A DNA stretch of 64,000 nucleotides. Origin: Asterias rubens (lineage: Eukaryota). Below, piece by piece: positions 61,301 through 63,052 of the stretch. Every line of letters begins with the position of its first letter. The stretch's first letter is position 1. The position numbers and the translations under genes were made by a program. Under the pieces are notes generated by a model, which saw only the letters and a list, made by a program, of their open reading frames with translations, did no database searches and was not told where the DNA came from. The stretch lies in contig NC_047073.1 in assembly GCF_902459465.1 (NCBI RefSeq), positions 16,430,001 through 16,494,000 of the forward strand, written 5' to 3'.

Positions 61301-63052
61301 TATTTCACAGACAAAATATTTTGATTTAAGTTAACTAGAGAAGGGATGGGAGGGGGTCTTAAAAAAAGAATTTACTGTAATACCTCGGAGATGCCACCTA
61401 TATAACTTTATTGTCATGCAAGCTCTTTAGTGAGTTAAGGGTAAGGCACATCCATGCCGGATGTATTGGCTTCTTAGGGCTAGAATAGATACATGTCAGA
61501 AGGAACTATGTACAAATCTTATGTATGAGAGATGAGAAGTAACTAAGATTCTTACCCGTGAGATTGCCAGAGCGGGAATCGTCTCTCTGGAATACTCTCC
61601 AGCATCTCCTGTAAACCTCCAACGCAATACTCCATCACTATATACGTAAGATGCTGTTAAGGAACTCAAAAGATTTGTTTTAAAAAATCCCAAGGAACTC
61701 TGGCTTGAAAATCCCATTGAATACACCCAAAGCTTTAATAAATATGCTCAGGAAGATCCTCTTGGCATATAACTCGGTCTTTTGGAATTTAACCCTTGGG
61801 CTGACTAACAGGTTGTTTTTCAAAACTTGTTTTTGTTCTTTTACTGAAACATGCTTTTGATTGAAAGAGGGGAGGGGTTACTGAACTGAATGATTGCATG
61901 AAATAGTTTTTATTTGGCAGAATAAATTATGTAAAGCTAATGTGGAAAACATTACAACAAACATAAATTATGAAACAGTGTTTGGGTGCAAAAACACTGC
62001 AAGACTATGGGCACTGAGAGGCGACAGTGGGCACGAACAGGGAGGAATGTGTCGTGGAAAATTATTGTTTACCGGAAGAGTTGGACTAAAAAGGTCTTCT
62101 GACTTTGATCTCTACCAGCTTTAATTTTATATATTAGTATAATAAAAAGCCAAATTCCAGACACCCTTACAATCATATGTCATTATTGACACTTATCTTT
62201 ACTTGTAAATAACTTCTGTTTCATGAGTGTTGCAAATTTGTTGTGTTATCAGAACTCTTTTTGGAGATTTGGGTGATTACATCTTTATCTTACGCATTAC
62301 ATGTAATTCAGAAGTCTGATCGAACTGTGAGTTTGTCAAGTTGAAACCAAAGTCTAGCAAGTTGGTTTATCACCAAAGTTGATTATTATGAAATATGATC
62401 TGACACACATATTCAACTATTTGCCAATGCAACATTTCCTTGTAGTGCATTCATTTCAGATTCTTAGACAACCAGCATTTGGGCAGAGTGTTCAGTTTGG
62501 AGAAAGGGAGTCATTAAAAATCTGAACCAAAGTCTTGGTTTGGGAAAAGTTTTGGGAAAAGCTAGGTTTGAAAAAAGTACAGAGGATTTCAGGAAACATA
62601 AATCAGTGTTTGGGAAAAAGCAAGGCTTATGATATTCAAATCAGCATTGAGAATGCTGTCAACATGGTTTAGGGAAAACTGGAGCAAGCTTTTGGAAAAC
62701 TAAAGAGACTGAGGTTGGAAAAACTGAAACAGGGTTTGGGAAAAAATGAAGCAGCATTGATTGAGGGAAAACTGAGTTAGGTTTCATAAAATGGGGGAAA
62801 ATAGAATCAGAGCTTGGGAAAAACAGAAAGAGGGTTTGTAGGAGGGAAATATTCACTATTTCACAGGTTTAAAAACTAAGCAGGGTTACAACAAAAAGAG
62901 GCTAGGTTGAGGAAAACTAATCTTCTGATTTAAACATCTCCTTCTGGTCTTGGTGTTTCAAAGGATATATCTTCTGCTTTTCTTCACTGTGAAGCACATC
63001 AACAAGCTCGATGACGTTTTTATGTTTTAATCTCTTAAGTAGCTGTATCTCT
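49262..63052 (-). CDS. STK11: Serine/threonine kinase STK11/LKB1, exons 2-9 (exon 1 outside the window)
   Basis: Spliced exons 62969-63052, 61556-61645, 53605-53737, 52145-52281, 51538-51665, 50681-50738, 50193-50407 and 49262-49383 join in frame: [173 protein letters not shown]...[10 protein letters not shown]. The DLG motif, the GSPAFQPPE activation segment and the C-terminal CaaX are LKB1 hallmarks. Confidence 0.98.
50070..50140. repeat. 22-bp x3 tandem repeat within a MITE copy
   Basis: Unit gggggcatggaggcattggtca. Confidence 0.8.
50193..50407 (-). CDS. STK11: STK11 exon 8 (215 bp)
   Basis: tgatag...gtacgt boundaries; [38 protein letters not shown]... Confidence 0.92.
50681..50738 (-). 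CDS. STK11: STK11 exon 7 (58 bp)
   Basis: ttttacag...gtaagt boundaries; [19 protein letters not shown]. Confidence 0.93.
51538..51665 (-). CDS. STK11: STK11 exon 6 (128 bp)
   Basis: ctgcag...gtaaga boundaries; [27 protein letters not shown]. Confidence 0.97.
51755..51925. mobile_element. Palindromic MITE (ttcatacttcctgcgaatgcg-type termini)
   Basis: Inverted gcgaatgcga/tcgcattcgc ends; a diverged sister copy at about 56070-56250. Confidence 0.6.
52001..52040 (-). ncRNA. Decayed hammerhead-like motif (PLE pLTR relic) in STK11 intron 5
   Basis: CTGCAGA-TGATCAG-AGCATA-CTGAAC-GAAAC-GTC; one core and one stem mismatch. Confidence 0.45.
52145..52281 (-). CDS. STK11: STK11 exon 5 (137 bp)
   Basis: ttcag...gtaagt boundaries; [21 protein letters not shown]. 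Confidence 0.97.
52282..52490. repeat. About 112-bp tandem duplication of the STK11 intron 4 3' end
   Basis: ctgaatcaagaaaaggtacaagaaagt...catttgcaatcataagtag occurs at 52282 and 52394. Confidence 0.9.
53605..53737 (-). CDS. STK11: STK11 exon 4 (133 bp)
   Basis: tttcag...gtaaaa boundaries; contains HKDIKPSN and DLG. Confidence 0.97.
54220..54610. repeat. About 130-bp x3 tandem repeat in STK11 intron 3
   Basis: Unit acccaaaacaatgtaag...catcggatgggattgatct...cattaccatggcaacc...cacttatggccc...aatgtatc. Confidence 0.88.
55176..55495. mobile_element. TTAA MITE family A copy (STK11 intron 3)
   Basis: TTAA on both flanks; shares the ctccctctgaagt...tgacaattaccaatagtgtccag core. Confidence 0.75.
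59777..60144. mobile_element. Second copy of TTAA MITE family B (STK11 intron 3)
   Basis: TTAA|AGGAACACGTTGCC...GGCAACGTATTCCT|TTAA; aligns to 21765-22120. Confidence 0.88.
61556..61645 (-). CDS. STK11: STK11 exon 3 (90 bp)
   Basis: Preceded by TTCCTTAAC...AC; encodes [29 protein letters not shown](G); gtaaga donor. Confidence 0.97.
61646..62968 (-). other. U12-type (minor spliceosome) AT-AC intron, STK11 intron 2, 1323 bp
   Basis: 5' end ATATCCTTTG (62968-62959); branch site TTCCTTAAC (61664-61656); 3' end AC (61647-61646). The flanking exons join in frame (AT|G = Met). Confidence 0.96.
62530..62925. repeat. Degenerate GGTTTGGGAAAA-type minisatellite in the U12 intron
   Basis: A dozen or more spaced gggaaaa/ggaaaa motifs with ggttt leaders. 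Confidence 0.65.
62969..63052 (-). CDS. STK11: STK11 exon 2 (84 bp)
   Basis: tgttgcag acceptor; encodes [27 protein letters not shown](M); followed by the ATATCCTTTG U12 donor. Confidence 0.97.

Follow-up and report, generated by a model that had tools for sequence, protein, structure and literature searches.

An AT-AC intron with U12-type signals, very probably inherited, in the STK11/LKB1 orthologue of the starfish Asterias rubens

The STK11 gene and its surroundings

The window, a 64,000-nucleotide stretch of the Asterias rubens genome (RefSeq assembly GCF_902459465.1, contig NC_047073.1, positions 16,430,001 to 16,494,000), carries on its minus strand all but the first exon of a gene that its sequence identifies as the STK11/LKB1 orthologue. 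Exon 2 (62969-63052, 84 bp) is preceded by a TTGCAG acceptor and supplies a shared residue (R), 27 further residues and the AT of a methionine codon. Exon 3 (61556-61645, 90 bp) begins with the G of that codon, continues for 29 residues and ends in the GG of a split glycine codon whose third base is the first of exon 4; a GTAAG donor follows exon 3 directly. The catalytic loop HKDIKPSN lies in exon 4 (53605-53737, 133 bp) and the activation segment in exon 5 (52145-52281, 137 bp). Exon 6 (51538-51665, 128 bp) and exon 7 (50681-50738, 58 bp) lead to exon 8 (50193-50407, 215 bp), which encodes the variable C-terminal region, and the coding part of exon 9 (49262-49383) ends in a stop codon after a CaaX-like tail. 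All of these exons are on the minus strand.

Exon 1 was not found in the window or in the next 10 kb. It was located instead by a genome search with the loose-end consensus of RNA reads, which placed it at G000:C13:16507959-16508302, 14.9 kb past the window end, where it encodes 114 aa plus 2 nt. A 37-residue stretch of this exon matches the human STK11 sequence. Intron 1 thus spans ~14.9 kb, and intron 3 spans ~7.8 kb. The intron phases are 2, 2, 2, 0, 2, 1, 2 and 1, a series that is also present in Ptychodera, Saccoglossus, Amphiura, Liolophura and Paralvinella, and exons 2 to 7 measure 84, 90, 133, 137, 128 and 58 bp, which are the sizes of the human exons as well.

Several comparisons bear on the identity of the gene. 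First, when exon 4 is compared with solved structures, the best matches are to STK11 itself (8vsu and 2wtk); GCN2, NEK7 and Aurora A rank below them. Second, the best end-to-end matches of the 436-aa protein model are echinoderm STK11 proteins, from the brittle star Amphiura (67% identity) and the crinoid Anneissia (62%); the kinase core is ~70–73% identical to hemichordate, amphioxus and vertebrate STK11. Third, the spliced protein aligns without gaps to STK11 of other animals.

Two other features of the window were recorded. An open frame of 406 aa on the minus strand (32413-33633) has reverse-transcriptase-like motifs in its N-terminal part and a GIY-YIG nuclease domain at its C-terminus (Pfam PF01541, 23.8 bits), an architecture predicted to mark a fragment of a Penelope-like retroelement. 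Positions 11963-12112 are 150 consecutive N, a gap or a masked stretch.

Splice signals of intron 2

Intron 2 occupies 61646-62968 on the minus strand, is 1323 nt long, interrupts the frame in phase 2 and has the termini AT and AC. A preliminary description of this DNA had placed an AT-AC intron at this position, and its coordinates and motifs are all present on the minus strand. The U12-type 5' splice site ATATCCTTTG lies at 62959-62968, the branch-point sequence TTCCTTAAC at 61656-61664 and the terminal AC at 61646-61647. Upon application of the consensus sequences by hand, the donor fits /[AG]TATCCTT, and the branch box fits TCCTTAAC and falls within the ~10–15 nt upstream of the 3' splice site. 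The earlier judgment that donor, branch and acceptor are close to consensus therefore stands, although the distance of 9 nt that it gave between branch and terminal AC does not: 8 nt are counted between TTCCTTAAC and the AC. The branch adenosines at 61658 and 61657 are 13 and 12 nt from the 3' junction, and the spacer that follows the branch box reads AGCATCTT, with no polypyrimidine tract. Exon 2 ends in AAG CAG AAG AT and exon 3 begins with G TAT ATA GTG ATG GAG TAT, such that the methionine codon of KQKM|YIVMEY is split AT|G. The proposal that human STK11 is divided at the same place is borne out by the published human intron, which lies between c.374 and c.375 and splits Met125 (PMC12366057).

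Each signal taken singly occurs in the window about as often as chance would have it, with two matches to the donor 9-mer and one to the branch 9-mer against ~1 expected. As a pair, ATATCCTTTG and TTCCTTAAC form the sole donor and branch combination in the window that could delimit an intron, and this pair flanks the exon ends defined by homology exactly. Three more donor-like motifs of the ATATCCTT type occur at 6408-6416 (minus strand), 1142 (plus strand) and 44051 (minus strand). All three lack a matching branch box or acceptor in range and probably arose by chance.

Degenerate short repeats resembling TTTTCCCAAACC on the gene strand make up the 5' third of the intron (62500-62900). Tandem Repeats Finder (TRF) gives periods of 21 nt at 62661-62744 and 12 nt at 62539-62561, and the repeats impart a strong GC skew of +0.36 on the plus strand. 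A microsatellite or minisatellite that has since decayed is their probable origin. An Rfam scan of the window returned zero RNA families and thus no sign of an intron-hosted snoRNA.

Transcript evidence for the junction

In the sampled RNA, intron 2 is spliced at exactly 62968 and 61646. Two assembled contigs, X2 (1641 nt, depth 23) and X3 (723 nt, depth 9), which come from different studies and carry different organism labels, join 62969 to 61645 and skip 1323 nt, as the preliminary description had anticipated. The skipped segment is bounded by GT..AT on the plus strand, which is AT..AC on the gene strand, and the placement of the joint is unambiguous ('both' = 0). The RNA status of the two contigs is the guess of the search tool; any contig from which three introns are missing must be cDNA. 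Because the genome contains the end of exon 1 just once, the joined form does not stem from a retrocopy in the DNA. Use of nearby GT-AG sites, the outcome named beforehand as speaking against AT-AC splicing, was not encountered, with both contigs skipping precisely 61646-62968 and no alternative joint reported in four runs.

When sequencing runs were searched with the intron region as the query, no run recorded as RNA was returned. With the 3' exons as the query, the runs matching in small share were transcript-like, and true RNA-seq runs were added. A second raw RNA-seq run contributed a single read, leaving X14 as the only run with usable coverage. Its 17 reads all fall on exons 2 and 3 (~5.5x), and the intron bins are at zero. 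The loose ends of these reads continue into exon 1 (...RIPNGEQNVR) at the 5' edge of exon 2 and into exon 4 at the 3' edge of exon 3. All 17 reads were placed only partly and the count of raw reads across the exon 2-3 joint is zero, probably because reads of 150 nt exceed the length of either exon (84 and 90 bp); the evidence for the exact borders is consequently that of the two assembled contigs.

Components of the minor spliceosome

The four minor snRNA genes, whose presence had been put forward as a check, are all full length in the genome, each with one match above the Rfam cut-off: U11 (92 bits), U12 (126 bits), U4atac (90 bits) and U6atac (124 bits). As judged from these matches, the genome as a whole has a complete minor-splicing system at the level of snRNA genes. 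The 5' end of U11, AAAAAGGG, and the U6atac box AAGGAGAGA are complementary to the donor of intron 2, and the U12 box GAGUAAGGAA is complementary to the branch sequence TTCCTTAAC.

A canonical course of removal can be proposed from these complementarities. U11 would pair with the ATATCCTTT donor, while U12 would pair with the branch sequence and bulge the branch adenosine 12–13 nt from the acceptor. The U4atac/U6atac.U5 particle would then take the place of U11 at the donor, and catalysis would follow. Cuts between AT|ATATCC and ..AC|G would release the intron and rebuild the methionine codon. From the signals and the orthology together, we infer that intron 2 depends on the minor spliceosome.

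The same intron in other animals

Annotated STK11 proteins from 11 species were mapped to their own genomic loci, and the same site was read in each. Nine of these species keep the intron, in every case in phase 2 and between flanking exons of 84 and 90 bp. AT-AC termini are shared by six of them, comprising chordates, hemichordates, the brittle star and the annelid, which agrees with the deep conservation of this subtype that had been claimed beforehand. In the gar Lepisosteus, the donor is ATATCCTTTG and the intron ends in TTCCTTAAC...AC after 4321 nt; in the tunicate Ciona, a 737-nt intron runs from the donor ATATCCTTTA to TTCCTTAAC...AC. The acorn worms Ptychodera (donor ATATCCTTTG, TGACTTAAC...AC, 2248 nt) and Saccoglossus (donor ATATCCTTTT, TTTCTTAAC...AC, 3079 nt), the brittle star Amphiura (donor ATATCCTTTT, TTCCTTAAC...AC, 4137 nt) and the annelid Paralvinella (donor ATATCCTTGT, GCCTTGAC...AC, 1852 nt) complete the group. 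All six have a ATATCCTT donor and a TCCTTAAC-like box 6–12 nt before the AC. They differ from the Asterias rubens intron in length, ranging from 737 to 4321 nt versus 1323 nt, and in two cases by degenerate branch boxes, TGACTTAAC in Ptychodera and GCCTTGAC in Paralvinella. In Ciona, the split codon is leucine (TT|G) rather than methionine.

The three molluscs retain the intron at the same site and in the same phase, with the U12-type donor GTATCCTT and a U12-type box (TCCTTAAC-like) near the acceptor, but its ends are GT-AG, in contrast to AT-AC in Asterias rubens. It measures 193 nt in the chiton Liolophura, 984 nt in the cephalopod Argonauta and 3970 nt in the cephalopod Octopus. Exchange between the AT-AC and GT-AG subtypes within U12 introns is well known. 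In the barnacle Amphibalanus, intron 2 is absent and exons 2 and 3 are fused, and in Hydra the whole STK11 gene is intronless. By parsimony, intron 2 was probably U12-type with AT-AC termini in the bilaterian ancestor; one subtype switch on the molluscan line and losses in some fast-evolving lines would account for the distribution.

The preliminary description had also expected gene predictors limited to GT-AG borders to mis-model this gene. This expectation did not hold among the nine annotated orthologues that keep the intron, all of which have the correct borders.

Other aspects of these gene models were noted in passing. The Hydra vulgaris gene (L009) is one exon of 1314 bp and is possibly a retrogene replacement. 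In Amphibalanus amphitrite (L010), intron 2 has been lost precisely and the neighbouring introns are kept. The two cephalopod models (L007, Argonauta, 21522-37685; L014, Octopus, 62089-72352) have a short last exon 10–16 kb downstream, which overlaps an antisense asparagine-synthase-like gene, and the CaaX-like tail that occurs elsewhere is missing; the annotated 3' ends may be mis-modelled.

Splice class and possible regulatory role

Three other accounts of intron 2 were weighed. The one that survives best treats it as a regulatory throttle, in which slow or regulated minor splicing, with retention of the intron, would limit LKB1 output. Precedent exists in other systems, where U12 introns can reportedly be rate-limiting, a finding that Patel, McCarthy and Steitz are said to have made in 2002. 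A retained intron 2 would also convert the methionine to isoleucine and shift the frame, as the human variant c.375-10A>G does (PMC12366057). Reads from X14 point the other way. At the low depth and in the one condition that this run represents, exon coverage of ~5.5x stands against zero over all 1323 intron bases, no intron-retention reads were present, and by our own estimate retention is roughly below 6%; at the same depth and in the same condition, no sign of regulation was found. A throttle is therefore considered unlikely. Its more specific form has LKB1 output in echinoderms pass through a regulated bottleneck, such as stress- or stage-dependent retention set by U6atac levels, and is regarded as quite improbable. 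Were it true, such a bottleneck could be the reason that most bilaterian lines have kept the AT-AC form unchanged from their common ancestor onward.

A second account has intron 2 removed by the major, U2-dependent spliceosome in spite of its AT-AC termini, which by themselves are no proof of U12 dependence. U2-dependent AT-AC introns are a rare class described from few vertebrate genes, and they have a polypyrimidine tract but neither the ATATCCTT donor nor the TCCTTAAC box. In Asterias rubens, by contrast, neither U12 box departs from the consensus, 12–13 nt separate the branch from the acceptor, and the branch box is followed by the spacer AGCATCTT. The molluscan orthologues, moreover, retain the U12 boxes together with GT-AG ends, and the human orthologue has been studied by experiment as a U12 intron (Hastings et al. 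2005, as cited in PMC12366057). Removal by the major spliceosome is thus very improbable. The weakest account, that the major spliceosome uses nearby GT-AG sites and the AT-AC borders are coincidental, can draw on the chance-level frequency of each motif alone in the window, yet it deserves almost no credence against two contigs that skip 61646-62968 without alternative placement, four runs with no other joint, and a protein from AT-AC splicing that aligns gap-free to STK11 of other animals.

Intron 2 is thus very probably an inherited, U12-dependent AT-AC intron of the STK11/LKB1 orthologue. Its importance beyond annotation quality is small. An STK11 gene model for this genome must permit AT-AC borders. 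The comparative series is a textbook case of U12-intron persistence, subtype switch and loss, and STK11 intron 2 raises no new question.

Comparison with published minor introns and human STK11

Starfish minor introns have already been surveyed in print. In the available portion of the survey by Larue and Roy 2023 (PMC10639083), Asterias rubens is part of the conservation matrix, its minor-intron density is comparable to that of vertebrates, and human, Saccoglossus and Aplysia have more than 100 minor introns in common in pairwise comparisons; STK11 is not singled out in that portion. Against this background, STK11 intron 2 is an ordinary U12 intron of the standard, ancient kind, as would be expected in a deuterostome that evolves slowly.

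The closest known system is the human intron 2 itself, a U12-type intron (PMC12366057) in which mutations cause Peutz-Jeghers syndrome. The human and starfish introns share the gene, the codon (the methionine after KQK), phase 2 and the AT-AC ends. They differ in host, a vertebrate in one case and an echinoderm with an intron of 1323 nt in the other, and in the nominal position of the branch, as the human branch variant c.375-10A>G is by name at -10 and the Asterias rubens branch adenosines are at -12 and -13.
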